From assembly GCF_048593235.1 (NCBI RefSeq), contig NC_133621.1, forward strand, positions 299,035,146 through 299,099,145: a stretch of DNA of 64,000 nt, in the 5' to 3' direction. The notes below the pieces were generated by a model. That model had not been told where the DNA came from, ran no database searches, and saw nothing but the letters and a program-made list of their open reading frames with translations. The position numbers and the translations under genes are program-made. Below are positions 3,365-64,000 of this stretch, piece by piece (the first letter of the stretch is position 1; the number at the start of each line of letters is the position of its first letter). Source of the stretch: Sminthopsis crassicaudata. Its lineage: Eukaryota.

Positions 3365-6165
3365 ATGGCCAATGTGAGTGCTTCAGGAGGCTCCGTGTTC
3401 CAACTGAGGCTCCAGAAGGGGGGCATCCTCTGGGCTTGATGCTTGGAAATGAGCCTGGAGACTCAAGAAGGGTGTGTTCAGGAAGGGCTGGGGATGTTAT
3501 AACCTCCCATCCTACCCCCATAGGTTGGGACTTCTTTCTCTTCTTCTCTAACCCCAACCCTGACCTCCCCAGCCCTCAAGGGATGCCTCTTCCATGCCCT
3601 CCTCTTTGCAACTTGTCTTTGGCAAGCTGATAAATCCAGAGAGATTCTAGGGAGAGGGGAGTAAGGGGGAAGTGGGATTAAGGTTAGGGTGTCCCTGCCT
3701 CGGAGAAATTCCATCTGTGTGGGGATGCTGAGGAGGAGAAGGTATAATATGGAGGAATCTTCTTCCTTGAGAAGGAAGGAAAAGAGAAGAGGTGGCTGGG
3801 AAGGGGAATGGGGACCAAAATGAGTCTTTTACCAGAGAATCAGATTTTTCTGGAAGAAACAATGGTTTTACAGAGTCAACTCCACTTCAGCCTTCTGGTA
3901 CAGAAAGACTTCAGACTCCATTAGAAAAGGAAGAAGGTGGAAACCAAAGAAGGTGTGGGACAGGGGGCAGCCCTTCCTCTCCCTCTTTTAAAAGTGATAA
4001 CCAATTGATCTCACAAATACACTATTTCCTCTTCTCTAGGAAACCAGTTTATGACACCCCTCACCTTGTTCTCAATTATTTCTCTAAGGATTTGGAACAG
4101 GAAGGACCACACATCTGTGCTACCTCGATGCCCTTATCCTTTTAAGGAGAAGTTTGTTTTTAGTGTTTCTACCAGGGTGATCTTTGATTCCCCTTCTTTC
4201 GGAATCTCCTCCTCCCTCCCTTGCCGATTCCCCTTCAGGAGAAGGGGAATCAGCAAGGATATGATTGGCTCCTGTCGTTGATTGGCACCCAGATTTGGCC
4301 CTGGAGAATGGGCAAAGCTCTTCTGAACACTTTTCTTGGGACCATTTCCATCCTTAATAATCCCTACTTAAGCTCTCAGAGAATGAGGAAAAGGGCAGGA
4401 CAATGACTGGGAATATGGGGGAGGTGAGGGAAGGCTGACCTAGCTACCAAGGAGTTTCCCCATTGAGTTACAGTTTATCTCCTACCCCTGGGATATAACC
4501 ACAATCCTCCTCCTCCTTCCCATCCTCCTTCATCCTTGAGCAAGGGCCAGGATCCATGTGATGGTAACAAAAGAAGACTTTGGGGCAGACAGTGGAACAG
4601 AAAGAACATAAACCTGAGACTGCAAAAATGTGGATTCCATTCCTATTTCTGTTGGTGACTTGTGTGACCTGGGGAAGGTCCCAATTTGCTTCTTTGAATC
4701 TCAGTTTCCTGAGAAGTTGACTGGGTCAGTCACTTAGGCTAGGTCCTCATTTAAAATATGGGGAAACTGAGGCTTAGAGACATGAAGAGAGGTTTCCTCA
4801 AGGTCACAAAGCTAGGACTGACTCCCACTTCAGCTCTGGCTCCCCTCAGCTCCCAGCCAATCCTAACCTTGCTGTGCTTGGTTTCTTCAGCCATTGCATG
4901 CCATTAAGTTGAACCTGAAACCTGGACGGAGCCTAAGACTAGTGGGAGATGTGTCATCTAATGCCCAACAGTAAGTACAAAATGGGAGGGATGAGGCAAT
5001 TTAAACATGGGTGAGAGCTGAATCCTTCACACATCTGCCTGCACTTGACCCTTAGAAGCACTAAACTTGTTTGGTCTCAGCTCTAGATGACTGGTCTTGG
5101 ACACAGAATTAGGGAAATCTTTCCAAAGGAAACTTCCCAGTCCCAAATGAACTATTTGGATAGGTAGTGAATTCCTTGTGTCTGGAGGTAGCGAAATGTG
5201 GGCACTGGTGACTTGTTGGACAGGGTGGGGGAAGGAGGGATACTGCTTAAGAGAGACCTTCTGGTAAGGTTGGAGTGAGAGTCCCTTTGGGGGGATTCTC
5301 TGAATGGGGATTTTCCAGGCTCTGAGACCTATGTTAATGACAGAGATATATTTTCTGTCCCCAGATTTAGAATTGCATTGAACAATATTGGCGATAACAT
5401 TGCATTTCACTTGAATATACGCTTCGACTATCTCCAGGATCATCACACTATAGTCTACAACACCATGAATAACGGGAAATGGGGCACGGAAATAAGACAG
5501 AGCTATTTCCCCTTTCTGCAAGGGGTCAGGATGGAGGTAAGAACCCAGAATCAGAGCATGGTATATACCCCGGGGAAGGACCCAAGACAGGATCTCTTCC
5601 ATCCCTTGCATTAGACAGAGGAGGCCTGGGAAGCAAATTGTGATGGGGGAAAAATGAAAAGCTAGAGGGTGAAGAGGGTCAGTGGGTTTCCAAAAGCCAA
5701 TGGCCAGAAACCCAGAATCCCTTGAGATGAAGAGGGAGAGTGAGTTGTGAAGGACCACAGCTCCCAACAGGATAAGAGAAGACTTGGGGCATGCTGGGAC
5801 ACATTACAGGACCCTAGCTTTAAAGTGGGAGGGGCCTTCAGGAGTTATCTACTCTGACCCACTCATTTTACAGAGGGGGAAAGGGAGGCTTAGAATGGAG
5901 AAATGCCTTACCCAAGACTCCCAGGGTCTTGGAGTCAGTGTCTTGAGCTGGAATTTGAATCCAGGCCTTCCTGTGTCCAAGCTCTGTGTTTACCTACTTC
6001 TGCCCTCTTCCCATTCAGATTTTCATAGTCTTTCAAGGGACTCACTTTGCAGTAAAGTTGCCTGATGGATATGAGTTTAGTGTCCCCAATCGCAATGAGA
6101 TAACAGTAATCGAATGCTTGGGAGTTAGTGGAGACATCAAAATGAGAGCACTGTCCTTCGTATGA
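3365..6165 (+). CDS. G1: galectin-1-like prototype galectin, 135 aa, canonical binding site
   Basis: Exons 3365-3373 (ATGGCCAAT|gtgagt), 4891-4970, 5365-5536, 6019-6165 = 9/80/172/147 nt as in LGALS1, all GT-AG. Protein MANPLHAIKLNLKPGRSLRLVGDVSSNAQQFRIALNNIGDNIAFHLNIRFDYLQDHHTIVYNTMNNGKWGTEIRQSYFPFLQGVRMEIFIVFQGTHFAVKLPDGYEFSVPNRNEITVIECLGVSGDIKMRALSFV. HxNxR, VxN and WGxExR motifs intact. Confidence 0.93.
5820..5970. mobile_element. MIR-like CORE-SINE in intron 3, shared by all array members
   Basis: CTCATTTTACAGAGG...GGAATTTGAATCCAGG motif. Homologous copies sit just before exon 4 at about 10975-11110, 18910-19080, 35415-35560, 43345-43490 and 53395-53550. Confidence 0.65.
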
Positions 6166-6221
6166 GCCCTGCAATCAAGCCCGCTTCAGACCATTCTCCA
6201 GGCTTGAAGCTTTTTATTACT

Positions 6222-6227
6222 AATAAA
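6222..6227 (+). terminator. G1 polyadenylation signal
   Basis: AATAAA about 57 nt after the stop, in a conserved TTATT(A/C)CTAATAAA context. Paralogous signals at 11366, 19331, 35810, 43739 and 53807. Confidence 0.8.
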
Positions 6228-7679
6228 AGTCCTGATGATGATAACAGTTGACATTGTCTGTTATTCTGGTCGGGGGATAGAGCGTTTGGAGTTGAATAGG
6301 ATGGCTGAGTGAGCCTGGACAAAGTCCCTTATTCCATGGCCCTTTGGTGCCTCTTTAGGAAAAGAATTCTCCACTGGGATTCATAAGTCATTTTTAGATG
6401 GAAAAAAATCCCATGTTCACTAACTTTCAGTTTTCCTAGTATGGCTCTGTGGTATTTATGTATGTAAAAATATGATTCGTATCCCATTGTTTGCCCTTTT
6501 GATGGGTAAAGAAAAATGAGAGGGAAGGACAGAATTGGGAGTTCAAAACTTTTAAAAGTGAATGACAAAAATAAATACAAAATGAAATATTCACTGAATG
6601 AAAAAACACAACACCATCACCACCATATTATTATGAGAAGTCAGGAGTCCAGGCCATAACACAAAGGTGATAAGTACTTAGAAGCTTCCACACTCCCTGA
6701 TTAACCAATGGGGAAGAGTACCTCCAGAGTAATAACCTGGGGGTATCTCTGTGTATTAGGGAAGGGAGGGGACTTGACCACAGACTGAGCAAGTCCACTT
6801 GCTGGAAAGTTGCTGAATCCTAACCAGTGAGACACTGTGAACCTTTGAAAACTAGCCTCAGAAAGCTCAGAGAAATCTGCAGACATGATGGGTGGTTCTG
6901 GGACTCCCTGATTCTGGAGTCAGACCTATTGAGCTCGAATTTGGCCTCTGACACTCACTGTTTAAATGACCTAGGAGAAGCTTCTGAGCCCCAGGTTCCT
7001 TAAGGGTAAAAATGAAGAGCTCCCAGCTCCTTCCACCTCTATATACCTGTGCTCCCATGGGTCCAAGTCATTCCCCAGCCTCAGTTTCCTCCTCTGTAAC
7101 ATGAGGAAGTTGGACTCCATGGCCTCTGAGGTCCCTTCCCTGAGCCTCTAATCTCTGCTCTCCTCTTCTGAAGTACAATAAATTCCATAATTTCTTCCCA
7201 CCTGGAGGGGAAGAATATGAGATAATATGATCTCTAAGGCCCTTCCAATTCTGAACTGATGATCCCAATGGACCATTTCTTGGAACACTCTGTGTCATTA
7301 GTTCCTAAATTCCTTATTCTGCCTGGGTCAGGGATTTCCCTTCTTTCATACATAGCTTCCTCTGATTGGTCCTGGACCTTCAATCCTCCTTATTCTTTTA
7401 TAGATTTTGGAGGGTGCAATATCCTTCTTGGTCTACACGTGTATTGTTCCCTCTTTAACCCATTCCTGATGTGAATAGGAGTAGCCCTCCTCCCTGATCT
7501 AATATTTCTGTATTGGGTCTTGCTATTACATCTTATTTATAGAGTATAATTACTATTTTTCCCTTTTCTTAGTTTTTTTTTTTTTCTATTAGAGTTACAT
7601 CATACTCAGCTCTACCCCAGGTTTTCTTTTGGATTATCCAATTATTAATATTAATCTCAGGCATATGGTTTAAATTTTA

Positions 7680-8177
7680 AATTTATTTTAAATACACATT
7701 GTTTTATGAATTATGTTGGAAGAGAAAAATCAGAGCAAATGGGAAAAAGCATGGGAGAGAAAAACCAAAAAACCCCAAAAAACAGAAAAAAGAATTGAAC
7801 CTAGCATGTGTTGATTTACATTCAGTCTCCTCAGTTCTTTCTCTGGTTGCAGAGGGCATTTTCTGTCCAAAGTCTGTTGGAATTCCTTTGGATCACTGAA
7901 CTGTTGAGAAGAACCAAGCCTTTCATAGTTGATCATCACACATTCTTGCTGTTATTGTGTACAATGTATACCTGGTTCTGCTTGTTTCACTCAGTGTCAG
8001 TTCATGTAAATCTTTCTAGGCTTTTCTATAATCAGCTTGTTCATCATTTTTTTTATAGAACAATAATGTTGTATTACTTATGCATGTACCATAACTTATT
8101 CAGCTATTTCCCAAGTGAAGGGCATCCACTCCCTTTCCAATTCTTTGCTACCACAAAAGAACTGCTACAAGCCATTT
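7680..8177 (-). mobile_element. L1 3' end (ORF2 C-terminus and 3' UTR), runs into a gap
   Basis: Minus strand reads ACSSSFVVAKNWKGSGCPSLGK, a degenerate form of the L1 ORF2 C-terminal [19 protein letters not shown] motif, followed by the L1 3' UTR. Confidence 0.75.
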
Positions 8178-8535
8178 NNNNNNNNNNNNNNNNNNNNNNN
8201 NNNNNNNNNNNNNNNNNNNNNNNNNNNNNNNNNNNNNNNNNNNNNNNNNNNNNNNNNNNNNNNNNNNNNNNNNNNNNNNNNNNNNNNNNNNNNNNNNNNN
8301 NNNNNNNNNNNNNNNNNNNNNNNNNNNNNNNNNNNNNNNNNNNNNNNNNNNNNNNNNNNNNNNNNNNNNNNNNNNNNNNNNNNNNNNNNNNNNNNNNNNN
8401 NNNNNNNNNNNNNNNNNNNNNNNNNNNNNNNNNNNNNNNNNNNNNNNNNNNNNNNNNNNNNNNNNNNNNNNNNNNNNNNNNNNNNNNNNNNNNNNNNNNN
8501 NNNNNNNNNNNNNNNNNNNNNNNNNNNNNNNNNNN
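8178..8535. other. Assembly gap (358 N)
   Basis: Run of N. Confidence 1.
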
Positions 8536-11163
8536 TCTGGGTTTCTGGGTCACCCAGGGCCTTGACTCAGCTGCAGTTCTCCATTTGCCATTCCTTTTCA
8601 GGAAAAGTTCCCTCAATAATCTGGACTCAAATGCCCCAATTTCCCTTGCTGCTTCTGGGAGGTGAAAGTTTCTATAATTCTGACTGAGGCTACCTTCAAA
8701 CCCAGCTAACCCCAGGGCTCCCTGCTATCCTTTCAACAAAGCTCGCCCCAAGGTATTTACACTTTATACTAACTAATCCTCTACCCAAACCACTTTCTTC
8801 TGGGCTTCTGCAGTAGTCCTAAAAGGATCCTTGTTCTGTCCCAAATCTTGTTTGTTTTTCACCAATCTATGTTTGTCCTAAGGCTCAATTATATTTTGTT
8901 TATGGGAGAAACCTAGAGTGCTTTGAATTTTCTGATCCATTCTGCCATTTTCACATAATCCTCCCTCTTTGCTAACTTTAAAAGACATAATTCGTTTACA
9001 AATCAGACCCTCAACATTTTTTTTAGGTTCTTATGTGAGGTACAAGATTGAGGTTTAAAAAATAAAACCAAGATCAAGTGTTATATAAAAACTTAAATTC
9101 TCTGAAGTTTCAGAATTATAGAACCAACTTTAAGACCCGTAGTAAATTATATAAAGTTTTATTACTGGCAGATTTTAGCAGAATTATCTACAACCCTTTT
9201 ACAAGTAATATGGAATGAGAGAAGCAGTCTCCTTAGATACTAGGAGAATGAGACCTATTCCAGAATGTCCAAGAGAAAATATTTCCACTCCATCATCAGT
9301 CAAAATGGGAAATTGAGGGGATTAGGACAGCAAGTGATCGATTTGGGGAATTGAATAAATTACACTGACTCAGTTTTGGTACTCAGTAATACAGTTAGTC
9401 CAGCTTCCTTTCTATGCAATTGTGGATCTAATCCATATTCCTTCTTGGGAGAAAACTTTATGGTATTTTTGAACCTGGCCCTACATAGCCTAGAAGCTGA
9501 ACCATGTTTCCCTCCTATTTAGAAACCCTTACCTAAAGATCTAAATTGGGCCGACCTGAAATCTGATCAGATCCAAAATTGATGCAAGGAGTTTTCTTAC
9601 AATTATACATTTTAAGCAATCTATATTACTTATCTGAAAAGTGGCCCTGTAATGTTCAAACAGTTATTGTTTCTACACTCCTTGCATTATATAAAGATAC
9701 AAGTCAGAAAATTAACTCCCCACCATTGACTCTCTCTCTCCCAACTTTGAAAGTTCCTAATCTCTCCTCCTATTAAAAATCAGATTACCTAATTTTGTAT
9801 TGACTACCTTTTAATTAATTGGCTTCATTTGTTTATGATAAAAACCTGTCTCTTCTTGTATGGGGAGGGGGTGCAATCCTAAGGTGATGAAGGGAGCTTC
9901 TCTGGCTTTGTTGGGCAATTGTCAGACATTGCTTAACACATCAAAAAACTTGTTAGGCTGATCTTTCTGTCTTCAGTCATTTAATATTTCACCCATAACA
10001 ACCAGGAAGGGGGTTGGCACACGGATTTTTATCTCCTTTTTATAGAGAAGGAAACTGAGTTTCAGTCAAGATATTATTTGTTCATGGGTCACATAGCAGG
10101 GCAAATGGGAGGAGACAGTACAGGGGGAAGGTGAAGAGGCTAGAAGCAAGTTCAGAATGTGAAGCATTTGGGGATGGTGGGAGGCTTGGGAGGACAGGAG
10201 TTGTGTCTAGTCTGCTCTGATTGCTGTTGGGGGCTCTCTTTCCCTGGTAATGATGGGTTTGTTTGTTTGTTTGTTTTTTGGTTTTTCCAACTCTTCCAAA
10301 GTTTATGGAATCCTTTCTTTGCCCTTGAGATAAATGGTGGGAGAAGGAATAATCAGGGATGTTGGATTTGAGTGCCTGAGCCTCGTCTGAAAATACAGAG
10401 GAGCTCTGCCATAGGAGAGGATTTAGTCTACTCCTGCTCAGCCCCAGAGGCAGAACCAGGAGGAATTTGGGACAGGTACAGAGGGACTTGCCTATTCAAT
10501 CCAACATAGGGAGCTGTCTTTCTTAAGGACCATCCCTTAAGCCTAAATCATGCTAGCTTTCACTGATTGGTCAACAGTAGGAACTAGGACAAGCCCCAGA
10601 TGGTCATTATTTCAGCAGGGCTTGGTTCAGAATGAATGTATTTAATAATTGTTTCTGTTTTGGACAGAAATCCTCAGGGTCATCCCCTCCCAGACTAAAT
10701 TACCAGAATCAGAGCAAGGAATATTCCACTTGGGAAGAATCGAAGAAATTTCTTCCACCTTTTTTTGCATTTGACAAAAAAGTCCTGGAAGAAAATTCTG
10801 ATGCAAAAAAAGACAAAAAGATTGAGGGAAAATGATTCAGTGGACTTCCAAAGGTCAACGACAAGAAGGCCAGCATCCCTTGGACTGAAGTGGGGAGAGA
10901 AAGTGAGAGAGCTGTGATGGGCTGTGATCCCAGTAAGACTGAGATATGCCAGGGTACATAAAAGGATCCTGGATTTAAAGCTAGGAAGAACCTTAGAACT
11001 ACCTACTCTAACTCCCTCATTTTACAGAGGAAGAAACTTAGAAATTTGTTCAGTTCACACTATGTCTTCTAATGAGTGTCTTGAGTTGGAATTGGAATCT
11101 AGATCTTTCTGTCTCCAAGCTTAGGTTTGTGTGTTCATCTCGGTCTGTCTTCTCCCCATTTGG

Positions 11164-11371
11164 GTTTGCATAGAATTTAAAGGCAGTTTTGTAGGGAAGC
11201 TGCCAGATGGGCTTCATTTGAGTTTCCCAAATTGCACTAACTTAACATCAATGGATTCTGTGGCAGCTCAAAGTGACATCAAAATGAGAACATCGGAATT
11301 GCCAATGAATTTTCCTTTCATGCCAGTTTTAGATCATTGTTCACTTTTGGAGCTCTCTTACTACTAATAAA
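11164..11371 (+). pseudogene. Galectin exon-4 remnant, paralogue of G2, exons 1-3 deleted
   Basis: Translates VCIEFKGSFVGKLPDGLHLSFPNCTNLTSMDSVAAQSDIKMRTSEL, close to G2 exon 4. The acceptor is mutated (CCATTTGG instead of CCATTCAG) and PNR has become PNC. Intron-3 homology begins near 10703, joined to upstream-flank sequence with no exons 1-3. AATAAA at 11366. Confidence 0.88.
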
Positions 11372-11684
11372 AGTACTGCTGATGATAACAGCTGGCACTG
11401 TCTGTTATTCTGATCTGGGGGATAGAGGTCTGGGTTCGGGTAGAGAAGGATGGTTGAGTGGGCCTACACAAGCTTGAAAGCCCTTTGATGACACTAAGAG
11501 AGGAGTTCTCCACATGTGATTTTTAGGTATGAAAAATATCATTTTTTTTGTTGCTAACCTTTATTTTTTTCTGGAATTACTATGTGGTATCCACATATAA
11601 AGAAAAACATCATTCCAATTCATATCGTATTGTTTGCCCTTTCAGTGGGGAGAGGAAGAACAAGAGAGAGGGAGAAATTTAAGA

Positions 11685-11815
11685 NNNNNNNNNNNNNNNN
11701 NNNNNNNNNNNNNNNNNNNNNNNNNNNNNNNNNNNNNNNNNNNNNNNNNNNNNNNNNNNNNNNNNNNNNNNNNNNNNNNNNNNNNNNNNNNNNNNNNNNN
11801 NNNNNNNNNNNNNNN
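11685..11815. other. Assembly gap (131 N)
   Basis: Run of N. Confidence 1.
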
Positions 11816-11895
11816 TATTTTTTTTGTGTGAATGTTTTATATATACATATATACATGTATATATGTATATATAAAACATTCACACAAAAAAAATA
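11816..11895. repeat. Perfect 80-bp palindrome next to the gap
   Basis: TATTTTTTTTGTGTGAATGTTTTATATATACATATATACA|TGTATATATGTATATATAAAACATTCACACAAAAAAAATA, centred on CATG at 11854-11857. Confidence 0.9.
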
Positions 11896-13389
11896 CAACA
11901 TCAACACCACCACCTTATTGTGAGAAGGGTTCCATGGGCTTTCCCAGACTTTCAGAAGTCCAGACTATAACACAAAAAGGTAATAATCACTTAGGAGCCT
12001 CTACACTCCCTGATTTGCAATGGGGAAGGGAGTAGTGACCTCAGGTGAACCTCTATGTAGTAGGTATGGAAGAAGACCAGACCACAGACTGTGGGCAAGT
12101 CCACCTGCTGGAAAGCTACTAAATCCAAACCAGTTAAGCCTTACTGTCCTTTTGAGGACAAGCTAAGGAAACTCAGATCTGCAGGTCAGATGGAGGAAGA
12201 CATTCCCTGGCTCTGAGGTCACAGGGATTGGATTTGACTTTGACCTCTGATACCCACTGTCTAGACCACCTTGGAGAAGGCCTCCGTTTCCTCAGGGTAA
12301 AATCAAGATCTTGGACTCCCAGGTCCTTCCAGCTCTCTATGTCTATGCTCATATGAGCCCAAGTCATCCCCAGCCTCAGTTCTTCTTGTGTAACATGAGG
12401 AAGTTGGACTCAATGGCCTCGGAGATCCCTTCTCTGAGCCTCTGATCTCTCCTCTACTCCTCTGAAGTACAATAAATTCCCGTATTTCTTCCCACCAGAA
12501 AGTGACGAAAGTAAGAGATCTGTTCCCAGAGACTTTGTATGTGCAGCCAGTTCCAGCTCAGCCTCAAATTCAAAGGTTTTTTTTTAATCACCATAGAATA
12601 AACTCACAAGCAGTGACCAAGGATTCTGCCCAAGCTCAGAGATGGGCTCACGGCTCCTAGATCTGGGCTTGGCTCTAGGGCTGGTTGGCTTCAAGAGGGC
12701 CAGCCCTGTCAGCTGCTCTCACCACATCTAGACTCCTCACAGCAGAAGGGGGATGACCAGTTTGCAGACTTTTGGGGGACACTCACTGTAAGCTGGGCCC
12801 AAGTCAGAGAGAGGCTTGAGAAGGAGCCTCCAGTCCTGGGTGGAAAGGCCCTCACATGCCTGGATGTCCAAAGGTTAGAGCCAGGTTCCAGTGCAGTCTG
12901 GGCTGAGAATTGGCTGTTTGACTGAGGGCAGGCCTGACCACCCCTCTGAGTATGGTTTCCTGGGTCAGATAATGGCTTGGGGTCATGACATTCACTCAGA
13001 GAATACTGGATGCCCTCTCAGTCCAGCCCTGGGAGAGAGGCAGAGAAGGACTGAAGGGGTCCCACTACTCCACCGACAACATGGCAGCCAGAGGAAGAAA
13101 CTGAGGCAACTTGATCAGATAAAGGACAGTTTTTTTTCATTTAAATTGGACTAAGTGTCCTCTCTTCCCATCACCTCCTGCTTCCCTGTACTGGATGTCT
13201 TTACCTAATGCTAGCTTCCCCTCCCCTTATCACTCTCAGTTCAGCCTCCTTTTCCCCAGTCCCTATACTCTATCAATGCTGCCTTAACTTGTTTTGTTTC
13301 TCTCTTCCAGACCCATGAGTTACAACTCTGGGAACAAACAGTGTCTCAGTTTCCCTCTCTGTAAAAATGAAAGTATTGGGAAAAAAAGA

Positions 13390-14425
13390 GGACAAGAATA
13401 TCAAGGGAATTAATGAAAAAATACAAAGTATGATGGTCATACCTAAAACTCCATTATGAAACAGCAGTCTTCAAAACCATCTGATACTGGCTAAAAAAAT
13501 AGAGTGGTGGATCAGTGGAATAGGTTAGATACCCATGACACAATAATCAATAACTATACTGTTCTAATATTTGATCAACCCCAAAACTCCAGCTTCTGGA
13601 ATAAAAATTCACTATTTCACAAAAATTGCTGAGAAAATTAGAAAATAATATGTCAGAAACATCTCACATCCCATCCCAAAATAAGATCAAAATGGGTACA
13701 TGATTTGGGGGTGATATCACAGATCTTTGAAGAAGGGAGGAATTTATGATCAAAAAAGAACTAGAGAACAATGTGAAATGCAAAATGGGCAACTTTGATT
13801 ACATCAAATTAAAAAGGTTTTGTAGAAACAAAGGCAATGCAAACAAGATTAAAAGGGAATTATAAAGCTGGGGGGAGTTGTACAGCCAATGTTCTGTTAA
13901 AACCTCATTTCTAAAATATATAAAGAACTGTGTCAACTTTATAAGAACACAAGTTATTTTTTGATTGATAAATAGTCAAAGAATATGAGCAATTTTCAGA
14001 TGATGAAATTAAAGCCATTTATAGTCATATGTAAAAATGCTCTAAATCATTATTGATTAGAGAAATGCAAATCAAAACAACTCTGAGGTACCACCGAACA
14101 CCTCTCAGATTGGCTAAGATGACAGGAAAGGATAATGATAAATGTTGGAAGAGATGTGGGGAAACGGGGACACACACACATTGTTGGTGGAGTTGTTGAT
14201 CCAGCCTTTCTGGAGAGCAATTTGGAACTGTGCTCAGAGACTTATAAAATGGTGCATACCCTTTGAGGGGAAATCATAAAGGAGGAAAAAGGACCCACAG
14301 ATGCCAAAATGTTTGTAGCAGCTCTTTTTGTGGGGGCAAAGATGTGGTCAATGAGCAGATGTCAGCCAATTGGGGAATGCCTGAATAAATTGTAGTATAT
14401 GAAAGTAATGGAATATTACTCTGTG
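13390..14425 (+). mobile_element. Degraded L1 ORF2 3' half
   Basis: Recognisable pieces include GATACTGGCTAAAAAAATAGAGTGGTGGATCAGTGGAATAGG and AGAGAAATGCAAATCAAAACAACTCTGAGGTACCAC. Many indels. Confidence 0.85.
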
Positions 14426-22600: not shown

Positions 22601-23849
22601 AATATGATTGCCTGGAGAAGTTCATTAGTATTTTATGCCATTTCCAGGAAGACATGCTTGCCCGGGTTCTGGATAATAGACAATGCTCTTCTCCTTTCCC
22701 AGAAAATAATGGAGTGAAGCAGGTCTCTATGTCTTGTGATAGATGATTAAACTCTATTTTAAGAGATTTGATATGATTCTCCCAGGGGTTAAAACCCATA
22801 TCTATGAACTACAGATTGTAAGTTCATTGCTTTGTCATGGGAAGCTAACTAGAGGACCTTCATCCTTGTTTTTCTTTGTTATTGGAGACCAAGCCCATGA
22901 TGGTGGAGGTGACTCAGTTGTATAGAAAGTGCCTGGGTTATTTTTGTTGCCCCTCTATTCATTGTCATCCTTCTAACATGCAACATTTTGAGATGAACAT
23001 GAGCACTAGACCAACAAGTAGTCCTATTTCCTAGTGCTCTGTGTTTCTATTGACCCATCAGACCATGTAAATGTTTTGACATCTGTTTATCAGGCCAGTC
23101 CATAGATCTGATCATTAGCTTCACAAGACCTCTTGAAAGATCAAGACAGATCTTGGTCTATAGTATAATCAATGTAGTAAAGATCTGTTCATTAACCTTG
23201 TTGTTAATCAGTAAAATTCTGTATTTTGTGAAGAGTCTCATGAAGAGTCAAGGACAAAGTCTACCATTCAATGAGATTCTGAATTTTTAGTTTGTGCATT
23301 CAATGCAGCCAAGCAGACTGAAATGTAACAGACTAGAGATCAGTTCTTTGTCACTTGTGTTTATTTTGACTTAACACCAAGAAAACACATGTGTTCCATC
23401 AGCCCGAATCAAACAATCTATATGTAGAATTGCATTGAGTGCACAATCATCTGTGAACAAGAAGTCACAGACCAGCTCTCTTGGCTTGTTGCCTTTTCAA
23501 ATCAAATAATTAACCTCCTGTACAGTAATTGGTCTTGATACTATTTTTGTCCTAATTGAAGGCATCTGACAATATTATTGAAACATTATGTTAAAAGACT
23601 GTGGGTCCAAAACCATCCACAATTGTTACAACAAATGGAGAAATTTTGAATATTGTGGACAATACTTTGGCTATATATTTTTCAGGGAGGTACACAACTT
23701 TTTACATACAAAAAATAATTTGACTCATATATGTTTTAAAAAAAAAGACAAAGAGATTGATACACAGTCAGAACTAGCTCAGTGTTTGGGAGACACCAAA
23801 GGAAAGTATGAGAGTAAAATTTAAACATAAAAGGTGATTATTAAAGTCC

Positions 23850-24330
23850 ATGTATAATTTTCTGATAGGAAAAAGATGCCATATTTATTGTCAATAACTT
23901 CTAGTCTTCCTAGTAGTTCTTTGTGATTTTTATACATGTAAAAATATTATCCAAATTTGGAACACATTTTTTTTTGCCCTTTCAATGGGGAGATAAAGAA
24001 TTTAGAACTCAAAATTTAAAATAAATATTTTAAATAAATAATACATTCTAATAATCACAAAAAAACCAATGACAACACCACCACATTATTATGAGAACGG
24101 GCCCATACGCTTGCCCAGACTGTCAGGAACCCATGCCATGACACAAATAAGGGTGACAAGCACTTAGGAGCCTCTATGACACAAATAACGGTCTGTGCAT
24201 AGCTGGTTCTAGCTCAGCCCTCAATTCAAAGGCCTTTTATCACCATAGAATGAGCTCAAAGGCAGTGATCGAGATACTGTATGTGCTCTGAAGTAGAGAT
24301 CAGGACTCTCCACTGCCCAAGCTCAGAGAT
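23850..24330 (+). repeat. Orphan copy of the galectin-unit 3' flank with no gene
   Basis: ACACCACCACATTATTATGAGAA...GCTTGCCCAGACTGTCAGGAA matches the flank after every polyA signal (about 6620, 11900, 36210, 44150, 54170). No exon 4 precedes it; it abuts the RTE. Confidence 0.7.
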
Positions 24331-25929
24331 CCATTCCTGGATCGGAACATGACTCTTGGGCAAGTTGGCTGGAAGAGGGCCAGCCTTGAGAGCACCTGCA
24401 GTCTCAATCACCCCATCAATTCTCCCAAAAAAAGAATGGGGTGACCAATCTACAAAATTTGCGGATCTCAGGTCCTTAGTGTCTTCTTCAGGGAGCATAT
24501 GGTTATTTGTTGTAAGAGAGAATAACTGGGACCAGGCAGAGAGCCCTAATTGGGTGGTAACATCAACCAGAATCCCTGTGACTAGCCCAGTTTCACCCTG
24601 TGAGAAGGGAGAATGTAGAAGAGACCCTGAGTTAGAATCCTGGCAGTGCTTAGGAGCTGTGTGACCCAGGAATGTCACATTCCACACTGAATCTCAGCTT
24701 TCTTTTCTTTAAAATAGTCATCATGACCAAGACAGGGGGACTGAAGTCTAGACTCTGGAATCCCAAAGGTACCTTCTGCCCTGGTTGCCTTTGGCCCTTC
24801 TTCCTTCTTCAAGAGGATCAAAATCATATCACTCTGTTGAGATCAAGGGACAGTGTTTCCAAATGTGACTGCATAAATTTAAAAAAGTTGGAAAGCTCCA
24901 TCACAGATTGGACATAAAATGTCCCTGTAGCCAACTCCTAGTTCTAGAGGTACTTGAAATTTGCCAAAGTACTTCTCTCCAAACTACTCTCTGTCTTCCC
25001 ATTTTTGAAGTAACTGATAATTTAAAAAAGATGGAAGAGTCCATTTTACAAGTCAGATGCTCATGAATTTGTTAAGATTCTTATATCATTCGAAGGATGA
25101 AGTTGCAGAATAAGAGAACCCGATTCAAGAGACAATACTAAATCGTATTAAGTTTTGTTACTAACAGATTTTAGCAGCATTATCTAGGAAGCTTCTACAT
25201 GTGATTTGGAACCAGAAAAACAGAACTTCTTCAGAGTTGCCCTGAGACTGAGACTTATTCCAGAATACACAAAAGAAAATATTTTCTACCACAAGAGGGC
25301 TACATGAAGCATCTGGGTTTCAAAAATATGCTGTTTAACTGGATATTGGGAGGGGGTTACTAGCAAACAAGGAGACTTGGTCTTAGTTAACATTGATGAT
25401 CCATATTATTTTGCTTTGGCATTTTGTTTCATGGAGTTTATGTTTATGTCGGAGTTTTCTTGGTTATCTTGGTGATATGTGTATCTCCCTTCTCAAAATT
25501 AGTCCATTGTAGACCCTCTAAATAGTTGGAGCTGTAATATCCTTTAGATAATTCTAATTGGAAATTTATAAAAATCCTTATGTGTTGAATTTATAGAAAG
25601 GAATATAAGAGAGGAGTGGGTTTTCTCCTCCACCGTCAATCAAAAGGGAAAATTGAAAAAATTGAAAGGATAAAGCCATCAAATGATTAATTCTGGACAC
25701 TAATTCTATCTTGATACTTAGATCTGGAGCTGGCTCAGTTCCTTTTCTATTTCATTATGGGTCTAATCAAAATTCTTTCTTGGGGAAAAAAACTTTTTTA
25801 ATTGTGGAAAATGGAATAAAGCCTTATTGTATTATTTCTACCTAGGCCTTCATAATTAGGAAGTTGGACCACTTCTCCCTGCTGCTTAGAGAGCCTTAAC
25901 TAAAGATCTAAATTATGCTGAGTAGAAAT

Positions 25930-39960: not shown

Positions 39961-41230
39961 ATTAAAATAAAATGTTACTTGCCTTTTCAATGGAAGCCCC
40001 CACATCTGTGTTGCCTACTGACTGCTGGGAGCTCCCTCTGCCTGTTAATCATGGTTTTGTTTCTTCAACCTCTCTGTATTCATAGAGTGATTTTCCTGCC
40101 TCTGAGAAAGATGATGGGAGAAGAATAGTCAGGAGTGTTGGCCTTGGGTATCTGAGCCTTCCCATCAAATACAGAGGGGAGGATGGTCTTTCCTCCAGCT
40201 GGCCCCAGTGAGATGTGTGAACTCCAGTTTAAGAACTATTATCTTAGGGAACTATCTCAAGCACTGAGAAGTTAAGGGACTTGGGAAGTGGGATTTGACC
40301 CTGGAATTCCTATTTTGAGGAAGTGGATCTCTATCCACTATGATGCTCTAATTTTAATTCTATTAGGATCCCAGTTTGCAGATGAGGAAACACAGGATCA
40401 GAGATCCTGCCTTCAGGTCCCTTTTGTGAGAGGAACAGGGTGAAGAGGAGGGAGGATGGGGAAAATCAGATCCCTTCTTTTCACTCAAGAAGCTTATGCC
40501 CCTCGACCCCTTCTGCCAAACATTCTCTTTGGTTAAAGGAATCCCAAGACCCTGTTTCCTCTGACTCCGAACCTCTGCTTTCATTTCCTCTCATTGACAG
40601 TGGAAGGGTTTGTGGGTGCCTAAAGAGAAGCTGTGTCACAGGTTTGAACCTACTTGGAGTTAGAGGGTCCTGGCTAAGATCCTCAAAGCTCAAGTGACCC
40701 AAGACCCTCAGTTTCCATAAGAAACAAGATCCTTATTTAGGTCTCTCTATGCTGTGCCATCCTCTGTTTAGGATTTCTCCTCCAGATGGTCCAAGAGAGT
40801 GACTCTCAGAGGAGGGTCTTCCCTTCAGAATATGGCCCCCAGCCCCTCCCTGACAGTGTCAGATTCTTGTTCATTCTAAAAGCATGTCTCTCTCCCCTTC
40901 CCCCAGTCTCTCCAACTGCATCCTCCAGAGAAGAGATTAGGGCTTGGTCCAGATTGAGGGAGAAAGGTTAGGAAAGAACAGAACTTGGCTGACCCTTCCA
41001 GAAAGACTTCAGAAGTGCCGCTGGCCCCGCCTCTCAGATACTCCCTCTCTCTTTTTATGCTCTCTTTGGGCGAAGAGTGCAGCAGTGGAGGGCTGGGGTT
41101 GCTCAGTACTCCATCTATTTGAAGGGTCCGATACCTCCCTGCGTTACACTTTCTGGCTTAAAGTTGAACCTTGTCCTACCGGGACCCAGAGCAACCAGGA
41201 GAACCACAGGAGCATTTCGCATCCTCCACA

Positions 41231-45619: not shown

Positions 45620-45962
45620 GTGAGAAGTTGAAGGTTTGAGCCCCCATCAGGTGTGTTGCTCCCAATATCACTGGACTGATTGCCCCCTTGCTCCACTGAA
45701 CTGCCTCAATATAAATCAGTTTTCTGAAACTTAAGAGTCTTAAAGCAGAAGTCCTTTGATTAATTTCTATCATTGATCCTCTCAGGAAGTCTGGAGAAGC
45801 CTTTCTGAGTAAAGTTTTTCTTCTAATAGTAGAAGGAAATAATACATTTCAGTTAGAGTTCAGTGAGCTTTTTCCTCTGCAAGATCACAAATCCTTTGGA
45901 ATCTCTCCATGGACCTCAGGCAGATCTGTGAATAAAAACCCCTACCTTAGAGCGTTATCTCA
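45620..45962 (+). mobile_element. Possible solo LTR
   Basis: About 340 bp not found in other units, with TATA-like CAATATAAAT, AATAAAA near its 3' end and a terminal CA. No clean TSD found. Confidence 0.3.
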
Positions 45963-59443: not shown

Positions 59444-60283
59444 AATGTTGGAGGGGATATGGGAAAACTGGGACACTGATGCGTTGTTGGTGGAGGTGTG
59501 AAAGAATCCAACCTTTTGGAGACCAATCTGGAATTGTGCCCAAAAAGTTATCAAACTGTGCATACCCTTTGATCCAGCAGTTTTACTTATATCCCAAGGA
59601 AATACTAAAGAAGGGAAAGGGACCTGTATGTGCCAAAATGTTTGTGGCAGCTCTTTTCATAGTGGCTAGAAACTGGAAGATGAATGGATGTCCATCAGTT
59701 GGAGAATGGTTGGGTAAATTGTGGTATATGAAGGTTATGGAATATTATTGTTCTGTAAGAAATGACCAGCAGGAGGAATACAGAGAGGCCTGGAGAGACT
59801 TACATCAACTGATGCTAAGTGAAACGAGCAGAACTAGGGGATCATTATACACTTCAACAATGATACTGTACGAGGATGTATGCTGATGGAAGTGGATATC
59901 TTCAACATAGAGAAGAGCTAATCCAATTCCAATTGATCAATGATGGACAGAATCAGTTACACCCAGAGAAGGAACACTGGGAAATGAGTGTAAACTGAGC
60001 ATTTTTTGTTTTTCTCCCCAGATTATTTTTACCTTCCGAATCCAATCCTTCCTTTGCAACAACAACAACAAAATTCGGTTCTGCACATATATATATTGTA
60101 CCTAGGATATACTATAAGATACTTAATATGTATGGGAATGCCTGCCATCTAGGGGAGGGGGTGGAGGGAAGGAGGGGAAAAATTCGGAACAGAAGGGAGT
60201 ACAAGGGATAATGTTGTAAATAAATTACCTATGCATTAAAAAATGTTATAATTATAAAATTAATTTAAAAAATTAAAAAAAAA
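59444..60283 (+). mobile_element. Young 5'-truncated L1 specific to the G6 copy
   Basis: ORF 59479-59886 is L1 ORF2 C-terminus. TSD TTACATCAGG at 59434-59443 and 60284-60293. The paralogous site near 47355 (TTTTTACATCAGGTACAGAAATGAGG) is empty. Confidence 0.93.
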
Positions 60284-62750
60284 TTACATCAGGTACAGAA
60301 ATGAGGTAAAGAAACAACAGCAAGTGGTATATAATGTGAGAAATCAGCCTGGTCCAGGTTTATGGAGTAATTGCCAGACATTGCTTAATATATCTATAAT
60401 CTTGAAAAACTGAATCTTTGTGTCCTCGGTCATATAATCATTCAGCCATAACAACTAGGAAGGAGGATAGTGCAAGGATTTTTATCTCCTTTTTATAGAG
60501 AAAAGAAAACTGAGATTCAGAGCGGAGATATGATATGCCCGTGAGTCACACAACTGGCAGAACAAGAGGTGATGGAGTAGGGAGATGCCAGGACTGAGGG
60601 GGAGGTGAAGGGGCTGGAATCAGGCTCAGGATATGAGGTATATGGAGTTGGTGGAAGACCTGGGAGGAGGGGAGCTGTGTCTGTCTCTCTGCTCACTACT
60701 GGGGGCTCCCTCTGACTGGTGATGATGGTTTTTATTTCTCCAATTTCTCCAAGGTTTATGTATTGCTCCTCTTGACCTTGAAATAAATGGTGGGAGAAGG
60801 GTGTTGGGCTTTGGTAGCTGACCCTTGGTTGCAAATTCAGAGGGACTGTCCTATAGAACATGATTTAGCTTGGTCTTGCTCATCCTCACAGGAAGAACCA
60901 GAAGGAATTTGGAAAAGTGCAGAGGGGGACCAGTCCATTCAGTTAGATAACGGGAACTGGCCAGAAATAGAACTAGTTGATCCCAAAGAGAATGATTTTC
61001 CCATTATTAGAGATATTCATGGGAAATCTAGCAGACAGCATGGAAGGAAGGTTTCAAAGGTATAGTTTATGTAAATATGCAGATTTGATGCTTCTGCAAA
61101 AGGATAGGGACAGGGATCCAATCTGTCATGACGTGGTATGTATAAGGAACTGCCAAGTAAGGAAACTCTCCTTTTCTCGGCCTTATCCAATACAAATCAG
61201 CACCAACACGGAAACTTAAAGTCTTTTGACTGGTTTGTGTCATCGACCTTCAGGGCAGCCTAGTGAAACCCTTCTGAGAAAAATTTTAGGTTTTAGATAG
61301 GAAGAGGAAATAGAACATTTCAATGAAAATAAATTTGTAGTTTCTTTTTCCCTTTTCAAGTTCACAAATTCCTTGGAAGCTATTGATGGATGCTGGGAAG
61401 CATTGTGAGCCTCGGCCTCAGGTTAAGATTTGCAGCTGTAAATTCTGGCCTTCAGGTTCACCTCAAGAAAGAAACAAGAGGCAAGCGGGGAAAAGGGTCT
61501 CATACTCCCCCTTCCCTCCCTCAACCATCCCCATTTGGCTTAATGGAATTCCAGGGCCTCTAATCTCTGACTCTCTACCTCTTTTTCACTGGGTCTCAAT
61601 GACAAGAAATGGGTCTACAAGTGTCTAAGCCCTAGCCTGGGTCCCATTCTCTGGCAGCACTCAGGGACCTCGTTGGGTTACTTAGCACTCCTTTCCTTGA
61701 GCTGGTAAGGCAGGGCTTTGAGTTACCTCAGTTTGCCTTCCTGCAACCTCATGATACAAACAGGGAAGAGAGTGATTTCTGACAATGGACCGGAAGATCA
61801 CAACCTAAGCTTCAGGTACATTTTTAGACTTTCTATTTTTGTATTTAGAGACATGGAGGAAATTCAAGGAGCTTCTGTATGGCTGGAGACAGGCACAAAG
61901 CCCTGGTGCTGTCCAAAGACATTGGAGAGACTCCCCGATCCCTCATCCCAGATGGAGACCAATCTGCTTTCATGTCCTCCTTCTACCCACCTCACTCTTC
62001 AACGAACCTCCTCAAACTCAGTAATCACCTGGGTAAGTTACTCTCATCTTGGCAACTAGGTTTCCCTATTTGTAAAACTTGCATGCTTTAACCATGTGAT
62101 AGAGTGGAAAGAGCACTGGCCATGGGGTCAGAGGCCCTGCTACAAGGCCTGGCCCAGCTCCTCACTACCCAAGTGACCCCCAGCTCTCACTTTGGGCAGC
62201 GGTTAAGAAACCCGATGGTCTCTTTGGTCCCTCAGGATTATAATGTTGTCTGATGAGGATTTCTGCCTTCAGATGGACTCTTTGGAGGCCAGGGGGCTGA
62301 CTCTCACCCAGCCTTCTTCCAACTGACCCCTTCCCTTCTAGACGATATCACAATTTGGTTCTCTCTAAAATTAGTTTTGCATAGTCTCCCCCAATCTCTC
62401 CACCACTCTCTCTAATCCCATCTTTCAAAGGACATTGGGGGGGGGGCGGAATGTGGAGGGGAAGTGATCAAAGAGTTGTTCCCATGTGGATTGGCTGCTG
62501 GCCCAGCCCCAGAGATAAGGCCTTTTGTGCTCTGTGTGGACTCCAAGTGCCTGAATGGGGCTGAGGAGGGGTGGGGTGAGAGTGTGACTGGCAGAGTAGG
62601 GGGAGGGCTCAGCTGAAGCCCTGGACTGGACCACATATTTGAAGGGGCTGATACTTCCTTGACTTAGCATCTCTGCAGTGGAGTTGGACCTTGTCCTTCA
62701 GGGACGGAGCTCAGCCACAAGAATCACCGGAGTATTTCTCATCCTTCATC

Positions 62751-63846
62751 ATGGTCAAGGTGAATGCGCCAGAGGGTACATAGACCGAGAGTGTCTTTGC
62801 ACATACAGGGTATGGGCTGAGGGTCCAGGTGTATCATCTGAAGTTAGGGCTTGGGAAGAAGAAGGGAGTGTCCTGGAACGAGTCGGGATGCTCTACCCTT
62901 CCTGTCTGTATGACTAAGGCTTCCTCTCTCTCTCCTTCCCTATCCCCTCATCCTTATCTTACTGACTCTGGAAAAAGCCGCCCTTTCTATTCCCAGCTTC
63001 ATCCTGCATCTGTGAGTTATCCATGGCTGCTGATTCCAAGATCTTTCACAAGCTGCTAAGTCCAGACAGATCCTGGAGAAAGGGGAACAAGGGGAAAGTG
63101 GGAGTTAATGGATTAAATTTAAGGTGTCCCCTGACTCTCAGAGGCTGCACTTGAGTGGGGTTTGGTAAGTAGGATGTAGGAGGATTCCCTTCCTGGAGTA
63201 AAGAGAGAAAGAAAAGAGGGAGACAGGTAGAGCTCGAGCTTCAGACTTGCTGGAATGAATGACTGTCTTACAGAGTTAACTCCAGCCTATCCTGGTGGTA
63301 TAGGAAGTGTCCTGGCTGAAGGGGATCCATTAGAAAGGCTGTAGACTGCAGACTGGCTGGAACGGAAGGCCAAGTGATTCACTAGAATCTTCCAAAATCT
63401 AACCTCCATCTCCCCTTTAAAAATAAAACCTCATTAACCTCACAACTAACCTTCTTGCCTGTTGTCTAGGAAGCCATCTCAGAAGACTCCCTTCACCCTT
63501 CCCCCCAATTATTCTCTGTTGGTTTAGAACATGAAGGGACCCCACATCTGTGCAGCCCTGGTTCCCTTAAGTTTCTCCAAAAAAAGCATTGGAAAAGCCA
63601 AGTGCCTTTACCTTGGAGTTTCTGCCAAAGTCACCCTTGATTCCTCATGCAAACTAGCCTGAAGGCTTCCTAGAACCTTCCTGAACCGTGGCTGCTTCCC
63701 AGTTGGTGCTCTGGGTCTCCTCAGGTTCCAGCCAGTTCCAACCTTCCTCTATTTGATCTGTTTTAGGATATGGTTGCCTTTAACTTCAGATTACTACCTG
63801 GAGGGACTATAAAAATAGAAGGAGAGATTCCACCCGATGCCAAGCA
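62751..63846 (+). CDS. G6: galectin-1-like gene, exons 1-2 only (continues beyond the window), sister of G5
   Basis: Exon 1 62751-62759 (ATGGTCAAG|gtgaat). Exon 2 63767-63846 encodes DMVAFNFRLLPGGTIKIEGEIPPDAK with an intact AG/GT. Exons 3-4 are not in the window, so integrity is unconfirmed. Confidence 0.8.
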
Positions 63847-64000
63847 GTAAGTGGGAGGTGGGACACAACAATTAATCCCGAATGAAAGCTGAATATGTGA
63901 GCCCCCTGCTTGCACTTCACCTTGATCAGAAGCACCCACCTGGCTTTGCCTTGTGCCCAAGTAGCAGAGCCAGGACTCAGCATCAGGGGAAACTTCCCAA

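Follow-up and report, generated by a model that had tools for sequence, protein, structure and literature searches.

The genome of the fat-tailed dunnart, Sminthopsis crassicaudata, carries a tandem cluster of galectin genes, which we interpret (probability about 0.75) as the 5' portion of an array of paralogues that descend from galectin-1 (LGALS1) and are specific to marsupials. The plus strand of the window, by which we mean the whole 64-kb stretch of DNA that was analysed, contains five complete four-exon galectin genes (G1–G5) and exons 1 and 2 of a further one, G6, as well as two dead remnants (Table 1). Amino-acid change proceeds at about twice the intron rate, without loss of the reading frame or of some 18 core positions; birth-and-death evolution together with diversifying selection is the best reading of these data. 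Galectin-1 in mammals is usually regarded as a single, slowly evolving gene. If the array is what we take it to be, a whole mammalian infraclass has made of this gene a large, fast-changing set of copies, and opossum and monito del monte, at the least, have retained a conserved galectin-1 alongside it. A literature search found no paper on a marsupial galectin-1 expansion and no functional study, in keeping with an earlier, sequence-only reading of this DNA that knew of no functional description.

Gene content and expression

Six promoter/exon-1 units lie head-to-tail within the window, and together with the five complete genes, each at its implied place, they bear out the six-copy array that the sequence-only reading had proposed; its assignment to a marsupial genome likewise agrees with the source organism. 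All introns of the G1–G5 models are of the GT..AG type, and splice sites are intact throughout. The coding exons of G1, G4 and G5 measure 9/80/172/147 nt, which is the layout of LGALS1 and also of LGALS2. This layout had been proposed for the array as a whole: G3 follows it with the short loop already noted (9/80/160/147 nt, four residues fewer), but G2 departs from it (9/80/172/183 nt), since loss of the ancestral stop has lengthened exon 4 and added a 12-residue C-terminal tail.

The products of G1–G5 are leaderless galectin-fold proteins of roughly 15 kDa. The NCBI annotation of S. crassicaudata already contains all five under the name 'galectin-1-like': the G1 protein is identical to 'galectin-1-like isoform X2' (P0001), G2 to P0080 and G4 to P0008, P0003 is an N-truncated isoform of G3, and the G5 sequence is contained in both P0152 and P0158. 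Ten long open reading frames from both strands of the window had no match in a Pfam search.

G4 is transcribed and spliced as predicted. RNA contigs from runs X5 and X6 contain the joints 41239>42237 and 42316>42707 (GT..AG), and the loose end of these contigs is the start of exon 4. Spliced mRNA from two RNA runs is on record for one gene among those whose junctions had been predicted.

Table 1. Features of the 64-kb window (positions count from its first nucleotide)
Feature	Position	Strand	Details
G1, complete, 135 aa	3365..6165	+	exons 3365-3373, 4891-4970, 5365-5536, 6019-6165; 7/7 sugar-binding residues intact
Assembly gap 1, G1–G2 spacer	8178..8535	.	spanned by no gene model
Pseudogene fragment	10703..13060	+	intron 3, exon-4 relic (11164-11289, frame broken) and 3' flank; tblastn, blastn; interrupted by gap 2
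Assembly gap 2, G1–G2 spacer	11685..11815	.	spanned by no gene model
G2, intact ORF, 147 aa	16578..19313	+	exons 16578-16586, 18056-18135, 18444-18615, 19131-19313; four canonical residues changed
Galectin-gene 3'-flank remnant, without exons	23846..24380	+	blastn; 69-75% identical to 3' flanks of G3, G4 and fragment 10703-13060
G3, complete, 131 aa	32946..35752	+	exons 32946-32954, 34489-34568, 34961-35120 (160 nt), 35606-35752; binding residues intact
G3/G4 near-identical tract	34560..35025	+	exon 2 end, intron 2, first third of exon 3; G4 side about 42308-42775; sliding identity
Conserved TNTTKGAAG block (G4)	41114..41126	+	alignment and regex; 115-121 nt before each ATG
G4, complete, 135 aa	41231..43681	+	exons 41231-41239, 42237-42316, 42707-42878, 43535-43681; R73 -> W
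G5, complete, 135 aa	51472..53749	+	exons 51472-51480, 52448-52527, 52935-53106, 53603-53749; H44 -> Q, R48 -> I, R73 -> K
G6, recent G5 duplicate	62751..64000	+	in window only exon 1 (62751-62759) and exon 2 (63767-63846)

Placement within the galectin family

The trees recover a marsupial clade (support 99/96 and 97/95) that takes in all 25 of the sampled marsupial sequences (97/95) and sides with galectin-1, separate from galectin-2. Galectin-1 and all marsupial copies form a group (96/84 and 97/86) from which kakapo galectin-2 is excluded. Searched against the PDB, G5 scores 99–105 bits with galectin-1 and 59–65 bits with galectin-2, and exon 3 of G3 also scores higher with galectin-1. The relatives were gathered by an exhaustive HMMER search; the copies are so diverged that word-indexed protein searches gave few. 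In the tree the window copies are not one-to-one orthologues of eutherian LGALS1, and the placement envisaged at the outset, galectin-1-type copies in a marsupial-only clade without one-to-one orthologues among named galectins, was recovered. Membership in galectin-2 was tested with a negative result (galectin-2 lies outside the clade, and the short loop occurs in G3 only).

A separate, conserved galectin-1 is kept in opossum and in monito del monte (Dromiciops), so the window copies are derived paralogues and not the canonical gene; G1, too, is not the canonical galectin-1. The conserved marsupial galectin-1 (P0252 and the Dromiciops upstream gene) constitutes its own lineage (95/89), apart from all window copies. 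In opossum a HAD-hydrolase (PDXP-like) gene lies 9 kb upstream of it; in Dromiciops it is itself directly upstream of a G1/G2-type gene. The neighbours of human LGALS1 are PDXP, NOL12 and TRIOBP, the locus lying between PDXP and NOL12; the dunnart window includes neither flank of an LGALS1-type locus. An origin before the marsupial–eutherian split is disfavoured, short of formal rejection (AU p = 0.076), and a marsupial-specific origin of the derived copies is favoured. The suggestion of an independent marsupial repertoire thus holds in that the clade is marsupial-only, but the repertoire is not species-specific, since orthologues occur in Antechinus and Tasmanian devil and family members are present even in opossum.

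Fold and sugar-binding site

Exon-3 pieces match the Pfam family Gal-bind_lectin (PF00337) with E values of 1e-6 to 1e-16, and the full G1–G5 proteins match it with E values of 1e-18 to 1e-32 (7.6e-26 for G1, 1e-23 for G2, 1e-18 for G5) over profile positions of about 6–132 of 132, so the galectin resemblance is not due to chance. A structure model was made for one of the five proteins, G5, the most divergent copy. This AlphaFold model has a pLDDT of 95.6, superposes on galectin-1 with a TM score of 0.94 and an rmsd of 1.0 Å, and has galectins as all of its top 40 PDB matches (eleven-strand beta-sandwich fold).

The seven canonical beta-galactoside-contact residues, H44/N46/R48/N61/W68/E71/R73, read in G1–G5 exactly as had been reported. 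All are retained in G1 and in G3, the S4–S5 loop of which is short; G2 reads R/S/N/N/W/G/R, G5 reads Q/N/I/N/W/E/K, and G4 carries the single change R73W. Across the marsupial clade a canonical residue is changed in 14 of 24 members, versus 0 of 20 non-marsupial sequences. From these residues we infer that G1 and G3 still bind beta-galactosides. Altered or lost beta-galactoside binding is predicted for G2, G4 and G5, which may have other ligands or a modulator role. The proposed mixture of lectins and non-lectins is accordingly upheld as regards the canonical residues lost from G2, G4 and G5, and the split between the two kinds is one read from residues.

Orthologues, birth and death, and gene conversion

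For each of G1–G4 there is a collinear orthologue in another dasyurid, either Antechinus or Tasmanian devil, and relatives are found across marsupials as far as opossum. Two independent assemblies, those of Antechinus (G1, G2) and Tasmanian devil (G3, G4, G5/6), show the same collinear gene order. The Antechinus orthologue of G1 is intact and 73% identical, and that of G2 is a pseudogene. The devil has an intact G3 orthologue that shares the short loop and an intact G4 orthologue (P0005) that keeps R73, and in this species a single unit corresponds to G5 and G6, the non-coding sequences of which are 94.5% identical in the dunnart. Birth-and-death evolution of the family is seen in the recent G5/G6 duplication, the two dead fragments and the dead Antechinus G2. 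G2 itself may be decaying: its orthologue is dead, and it has lost four of the binding residues.

The window copies are 30–57% identical to one another in protein. Between G3 and G4, intron 2 is 98.7% identical and the coding sequence 77.6%; four-sequence site patterns in intron 2 are 0 orthologous versus 11 concerted, and the tract at 34560–35025 is a local G3/G4 gene conversion. Intron 3 of the pair shows 84% identity, with site patterns of the orthologous kind. Identical introns beside diverged exons was considered as a general rule for G3 and G4 and rejected, the near-identity being this one conversion tract of ~470 nt.

Rate of change and selection

Orthologue divergence in coding sequence versus introns is 15.4 vs 9.2%, 15.2 vs 8.4% and 15.9 vs 8.3% in three pairs (Fisher p = 2.5e-4, 4.4e-4 and 1.1e-5). 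Coding divergence of about twice the intron divergence in these pairs agrees with the rapid diversification that had been claimed. In the same pairs dN is 0.16–0.19 against an intron K of about 0.09–0.10, and dS, at 0.16–0.23, is likewise above the intron rate, so the exon excess could partly stem from gene conversion or mutation bias. The dN/dS ratio (Nei–Gojobori) is 0.7–1.2 between orthologues and 0.65–1.48 between paralogues. Indels in the three orthologue coding sequences number 0, versus 10.2 expected from intron indel density (P = 3.6e-5); no stop or frameshift has arisen in the three pairs, the probability of no stop being about 0.1 per gene. Within the marsupial clade, 18 positions show conservation of 90% or more. 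The fast change suggests diversifying selection on surface, groove-edge and N- and C-terminal (dimer-interface) positions.

The high ratios could instead signal neutrality, with redundant duplicates under relaxed constraint drifting towards pseudogenes. The orthologue and paralogue dN/dS values, the dead fragments at 10703–13060 and 23846–24380, the dead Antechinus G2 and the loss of canonical residues from G2, G4 and G5 would all suit such decay, but neutrality cannot raise dN to twice the intron rate, nor does it fit the missing indels and stops, the intact splice sites, the core positions conserved clade-wide, the intact orthologues of G1, G3 and G4, or the spliced G4 mRNA. We consider drift unlikely as a general account, although it may hold for G2 alone; for G1, G3, G4 and G5 a pseudogene array was rejected on frame retention, conserved core and dN excess. 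It is slightly less probable still that the exon excess came mainly from gene conversion among diverged paralogues, which would introduce clustered synonymous and non-synonymous changes without selection for diversity. Such exchange has a clear precedent in the G3/G4 tract and would account for a dS above the intron rate; however, the sole tract seen homogenises intron 2 and does not diversify exons, exons yield few concerted patterns (6 among 387 compared columns, the complete G4 coding sequence having 65 differences), and the remaining paralogues, about 34–43% diverged in coding nucleotides, are poor conversion partners.

Two further accounts concern where the copies came from. Descent of the array from galectin-2 (LGALS2), with the short loop of G3 as the ancestral state, draws on an exon layout common to LGALS1 and LGALS2, on their close proximity in tetrapods (PMC10343441) and on a G3 loop of galectin-2 length. 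It is very improbable and was rejected on the tree and the PDB scores: kakapo galectin-2 branches outside, G3 exon 3 and G5 both favour galectin-1, and only G3 and its devil orthologue have the short loop. An assembly artefact, whether haplotigs or repeats collapsed or expanded around N gaps, could be suspected from the two N gaps in the G1–G2 spacer and from the block there that Antechinus lacks, but the low protein identity among the copies, the same collinear order in independent Antechinus and Tasmanian devil assemblies, and the 65–72% identity of the between-gap fragment to every paralogue leave it a negligible chance. It was rejected on copy divergence and on the collinear loci of two other species, and the risk is limited to the gapped spacer.

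Comparison with known systems

The window copies share with vertebrate galectin-1 (human, bovine; PDB 1gzw, 1sla) the four-exon layout, a length of about 135 residues, the lack of a signal peptide, a gapless alignment, the close fit of the G5 model and the same side of the tree. Unlike it, they are several-fold faster evolving and are 30–49% identical to eutherian galectin-1; of the five complete copies, G2, G4 and G5 lack at least one canonical sugar-binding residue. A single Gal-1 has been reported for most mammalian genomes (PMC4224342).

The primate chromosome-19 placental cluster (LGALS13/14/16 and CLC) likewise consists of prototype galectins that are clustered in tandem and specific to one lineage, with a raised evolutionary rate and binding-site changes. 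It is analogous to the dunnart array in evolutionary mode and differs in ancestor and locus: its members arose beside LGALS4 and have the N-terminal CRD-type exon structure, LGALS1 and LGALS2 being of the other type (PMC10343441). Descent of the dunnart array from the vicinity of LGALS4 was tested with a negative result, as exon layout and tree both indicate LGALS1.

Duplicated galectin-1-type proteins are known as congerins I and II, the skin-mucus lectins of the conger eel, which show accelerated amino-acid change and are among the PDB and fold matches. They are a pair of genes duplicated independently in fish, with no array, and they have retained lactose binding. Sauropsid Gal-1A/Gal-1B and the Xenopus gal-1 triplicate are likewise lineage-specific galectin-1 duplications, with positive selection possible for one copy (PMC4224342). 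Unlike the array, each of these sets has two or three genes, and every sampled sauropsid or amphibian sequence has 7/7 binding residues.

Proposed explanation

Galectin-1 would have been duplicated in marsupials to give a tandem array of derived paralogues beside the conserved copy lineage. The copies would turn over by birth and death, with local conversion between G3 and G4, and diversifying selection would drive change at surface, groove-edge and dimer-interface positions with the fold core retained. G1 and G3 would remain beta-galactoside binders, and G2, G4 and G5 may have shifted to other ligands or to modulation. The selective driver, the least certain step, may be conflict, either host–pathogen or mother–young. 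Tentatively, the derived paralogues could be to marsupials what the placental galectin cluster is to primates, a rapidly diversifying set of leaderless lectins and ex-lectins at a conflict interface (uterus/yolk-sac placenta, milk, pouch or pathogen-facing mucosa) in which copies that lost sugar binding have gained new ligands; we regard this as possible but less likely than not.

The array offers a natural experiment on the repurposing of a lectin fold, in which fixed and variable positions and the frequency of sugar-site abandonment can be read, and the parallel with the primate cluster allows a gene-by-gene comparison. It also supplies candidate genes, so far machine-annotated only, for marsupial immunology and reproductive biology.

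Shared non-coding features, remnants and assembly gaps

The shared upstream motif and 5' UTR that had been described are found in 6/6 copies, as a conserved leader preceded by the TNTTKGAAG block. Matches to the motif start at 16457 (G2) and 32829 (G3), and equivalent blocks align upstream of G1, G5 and G6. The G4 mRNA contig from run X5 extends 58 nt beyond 41150 and, if collinear with the genome, would reach upstream of the block, so TNTTKGAAG is only a putative TATA box. A poly(A) signal lies 57–58 nt past the stop in G1, G3, G4 and G5. By blastn, every copy shows homology across intron 3, with its putative MIR, and across the 3' flank, as expected from the shared 3' flank noted previously.

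Both sides of gap 2 align collinearly to paralogue 3' flanks. The pseudogene fragment that this gap interrupts is nearest to G2, and its identity of 65–72% to the paralogues marks it as old and not as an assembly duplicate. The collinear locus of Antechinus lacks the block at 7995–15303. The pseudogene fragment and the 3'-flank remnant are both additions to the list of features in the sequence-only reading.

Gene Models and Architecture of the Array

Scanned for motifs, the six-frame translation yields five open frames carrying galectin-type strings of the form H-x-N-x-R ... W-x-x-E-x-R, all on the plus strand, and splice-site-aware searches give four-exon models for five genes (G1–G5) plus exons 1 and 2 of G6, a sixth gene, with GT..AG borders in all introns. 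The galectin-1-type array of at least six copies proposed by the sequence-only reading is borne out, as five complete models and a sixth partial one. The coding exon layout of that reading, 9/80/172/147 nt, holds for G1, G4, and G5 but not for exon 3 of G3, which at 160 nt leaves a loop four residues shorter, or exon 4 of G2, which at 183 nt has lost the ancestral stop and encodes a 12-residue tail. The promoter block and 5' leader that it described as shared are present in six of six copies, the block (TNTTKGAAG) lying 115–121 nt upstream of the ATG, and a poly(A) signal is found 57–58 nt past the stop in four copies. Protein identity among the copies in the window is only 30–57%.

Features of the window (+ strand coordinates)
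Feature	Position	Strand	Description
G1	3365-6165	+	135 aa, four exons
N run 1	8178-8535		G1-G2 spacer, clear of all gene models
Pseudogene fragment	10703-13060	+	intron 3, exon-4 relic, 3' flank; between and around N runs
N run 2	11685-11815		G1-G2 spacer, clear of all gene models
G2	16578-19313	+	147 aa, four exons
Second remnant	23846-24380	+	galectin-gene 3' flank only
G3	32946-35752	+	131 aa, four exons
G4	41231-43681	+	135 aa, four exons
G5	51472-53749	+	135 aa, four exons
G6	from 62751, off window end	+	exons 1 and 2 only in window

The exon-4 relic of the pseudogene fragment (11164-11289) has a broken frame. The fragment is 65–72% identical to every paralogue, which identifies it as an old pseudogene relic rather than a duplication introduced by the assembly, and both sides of the second gap are collinear with the 3' flanks of the paralogues. 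Block 7995-15303, which contains both N runs, interspersed repeats, and this fragment, finds no equivalent in the collinear locus of Antechinus flavipes and represents either a dunnart insertion or retained duplicate, or an Antechinus deletion. Ten further long ORFs on both strands of the window gave no Pfam match.

Identity and Placement in the Galectin Family

Pfam Gal-bind_lectin hits are obtained with the separate exon pieces as well as with the complete proteins. G1, G2, and G4 are identical to NCBI 'galectin-1-like' proteins of Sminthopsis crassicaudata, which places the window in the fat-tailed dunnart, and G3 and G5 are contained in NCBI models of the same name and species; the window genes are already machine-annotated at NCBI. 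G5, the most divergent copy, aligns without gaps to human galectin-1 and scores 99–105 bits against galectin-1 vs 59–65 against galectin-2; its AlphaFold model (pLDDT 95.6) superposes on bovine and human galectin-1 with a TM of 0.94 and an rmsd of 1.0 Å.

Relatives gathered by an exhaustive profile search followed by name look-ups came from Antechinus, Tasmanian devil, koala, wombat, bilby, sugar glider, tammar wallaby, monito del monte (Dromiciops gliroides), and opossum. In the tree that had been proposed as a check, all marsupial sequences form one clade (branch supports 99/96 and 97/95 in two maximum-likelihood trees), eutherian and platypus galectin-1 form a separate clade, and kakapo galectin-2 falls outside the group of galectin-1 and the marsupial copies. 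G1 and G2 fall in a subfamily supported at 100/98, whose other members come from Dromiciops, koala, glider, wombat, and Antechinus; G3 and G4 cluster with a devil protein, and G5 sits on a long branch. This placement and the G5 scores indicate that the derivation from galectin-1 was largely right on descent. The proposal of a marsupial repertoire stands as a marsupial-only clade but not as a species-specific array, relatives being found across marsupials to opossum.

An alternative tree joins the conserved marsupial gene to the galectin-1 of other mammals and makes the derived copies older; it is 20 log-likelihood units worse, a deficit short of significance in the AU test (p = 0.076). That conserved gene is represented by an opossum 'galectin-1' (P0252), which is 62–66% identical to eutherian and platypus galectin-1 and lies 9 kb downstream of a PDXP-type HAD-hydrolase gene; the window exon pieces are only 34–60% identical to it. 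Its Dromiciops orthologue (74% identity over exons 3–4, grouped at 95/89) stands directly upstream of a G1/G2-type gene. Since opossum and Dromiciops have this separate conserved galectin-1, no window copy is the canonical gene, including G1 with its intact site, and the first interpretation is corrected accordingly: the array exists in addition to a conserved galectin-1. A 10-kb stretch immediately upstream of G1's orthologue in Antechinus contains no such conserved gene. In Dromiciops, galectin-1-like genes extend across at least 220 kb of one chromosome (loci L002 and L004; CM033369.1 289.11-289.35 Mb), with the conserved orthologue at the upstream end of L002.

Sugar-Binding Site, Rate of Change, and Constraint

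The seven canonical sugar-contact residues (H44/N46/R48/N61/W68/E71/R73) are kept in 20 of 20 non-marsupial sequences, galectin-2 and shark galectins included, and at least one is changed in 14 of the 24 marsupial clade members. Binding-site configurations likewise differ within the window, where the encoded site is intact in G1 and G3 and altered in G2 (four changes), G4 (one), and G5 (three).

Paralogue dN/dS ranges from 0.65 to 1.48. A cleaner test of rate is provided by orthologue pairs with their own introns as a neutral yardstick, and here the claim of rapid diversification is largely supported, coding divergence being about twice that of introns in three pairs: G1 of dunnart vs Antechinus (15.4% vs 9.2%, Fisher p 2.5e-4), G3 of dunnart vs devil (15.2% vs 8.4%, p 4.4e-4), and G4 of dunnart vs devil (15.9% vs 8.3%, p 1.1e-5). 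Orthologue dN (0.16–0.19) is about twice the intron distance (0.09–0.10); dS (0.16–0.23) also exceeds that distance, so that conversion or mutation bias may add to the coding excess, and dN/dS by simple counting is 0.7–1.2. Free drift of these genes is contradicted by several observations: the three coding sequences contain no indels vs 10.2 expected from intron indel density (P = 3.6e-5), random substitutions at the observed number would keep the frame open with a probability of only about 0.1 per gene, and 18 positions are at least 90% conserved among the 24 marsupial sequences. Per site, the marsupial clade has on average about double the entropy of amniote canonical galectin-1; the excess is greatest in the N- and C-terminal strands, the loop following R48, and groove-side residues.

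Turnover and Gene Conversion

Collinearity with the window extends over 1-7994 and 15304-20039 for the Antechinus locus (L001), and over 34146-45709 and then 59448-62411 for the devil locus (L003). Intact orthologues with identical exon structure exist for G1 in Antechinus and for G3 and G4 in devil; the short G3 loop is shared with the devil orthologue, and R73W of G4 is dunnart-specific relative to its devil orthologue. The Antechinus orthologue of G2 (L001:19011-21309) is dead: exon 3 contains an in-frame stop, the donor that follows exon 2 is GC, intron 3 is largely deleted, and no gene is called there; dunnart G2 may itself be dying. The devil has one G5/G6 unit (L003:18240-21270 vs window 50527-51127 and 59448-62411), and in the dunnart the non-coding DNA of G5 and G6 shows 94.5% identity; the duplication is therefore recent and specific to the dunnart lineage. 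Together, these gains, losses, and duplications are a birth-and-death pattern.

Intron 2 of G3 and G4 is 98.7% identical vs 77.6% for the coding sequence. Fine mapping places the near-identical tract, about 470 nt long, from the end of exon 2 to the first third of exon 3, so near-identity as a general property of the G3/G4 introns is ruled out. Site patterns from G3, G4, and their devil orthologues comprise 0 orthologous and 11 concerted sites in intron 2, 36 and 2 in intron 3, and 10 and 0 in exon 4. The tract map and these patterns attribute the intron identity to local gene conversion.

Expression of G4

The prediction of spliced transcripts is upheld for G4 by assembled RNA contigs from two sequencing runs of one study (X5 and X6), which contain the joints 41239 > 42237 and 42316 > 42707 with GT..AG ends and run past 42878 into letters matching the start of exon 4, thereby confirming all three introns. 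The G4 contig of 607 nt terminates about 60 nt downstream of the stop codon, close to the poly(A) signal. In X5 it extends 58 nt beyond 41150, to an inferred 41092-41150, and passes the TNTTKGAAG block if collinear with the genome, which points to a transcription start upstream of the block, or an upstream non-coding exon, in G4; a TATA-box role of the block is therefore putative. Position 42785 is A in X5 vs G in the assembly, a synonymous difference (G4 codon 56, GAG to GAA) that is probably a polymorphism. Four other runs labelled 'RNA?' (X1–X4) hold uninterrupted intron sequence, no joints, and 41–71% of genomic words (41150-43140), and look like DNA-like or unspliced nuclear RNA libraries.

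Other Galectin Expansions

Literature searches found no description of a marsupial or dunnart galectin expansion. Metatheria were among the groups covered by a 2023 review of galectin evolution, which makes no mention of an LGALS1 array (PMC10343441), and LGALS1 is among the immune transcripts of the koala milk transcriptome (PMC5054531). The array is apparently a machine-annotated but undescribed, lineage-specific, and fast-evolving prototype-galectin cluster; the functional proposals of the sequence-only reading, such as roles in milk or the pouch, are speculative. A single 14.3-Mb contig of the bat Pteronotus mesoamericanus encodes at least four 'galectin-1-like' proteins (P0227, P0239, P0258, P0267), 53–72% identical to eutherian galectin-1, and two more come from separate contigs of the slow loris (P0208, P0213), which suggests that galectin-1 expansions may also occur in some eutherians. 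At the top of the profile search are predicted proteins of 2,500–3,800 residues with 18–26 galectin domains (P0009, P0010, P0011, P0012), which may be genuine multi-CRD proteins, or else tandem arrays merged into single gene models.
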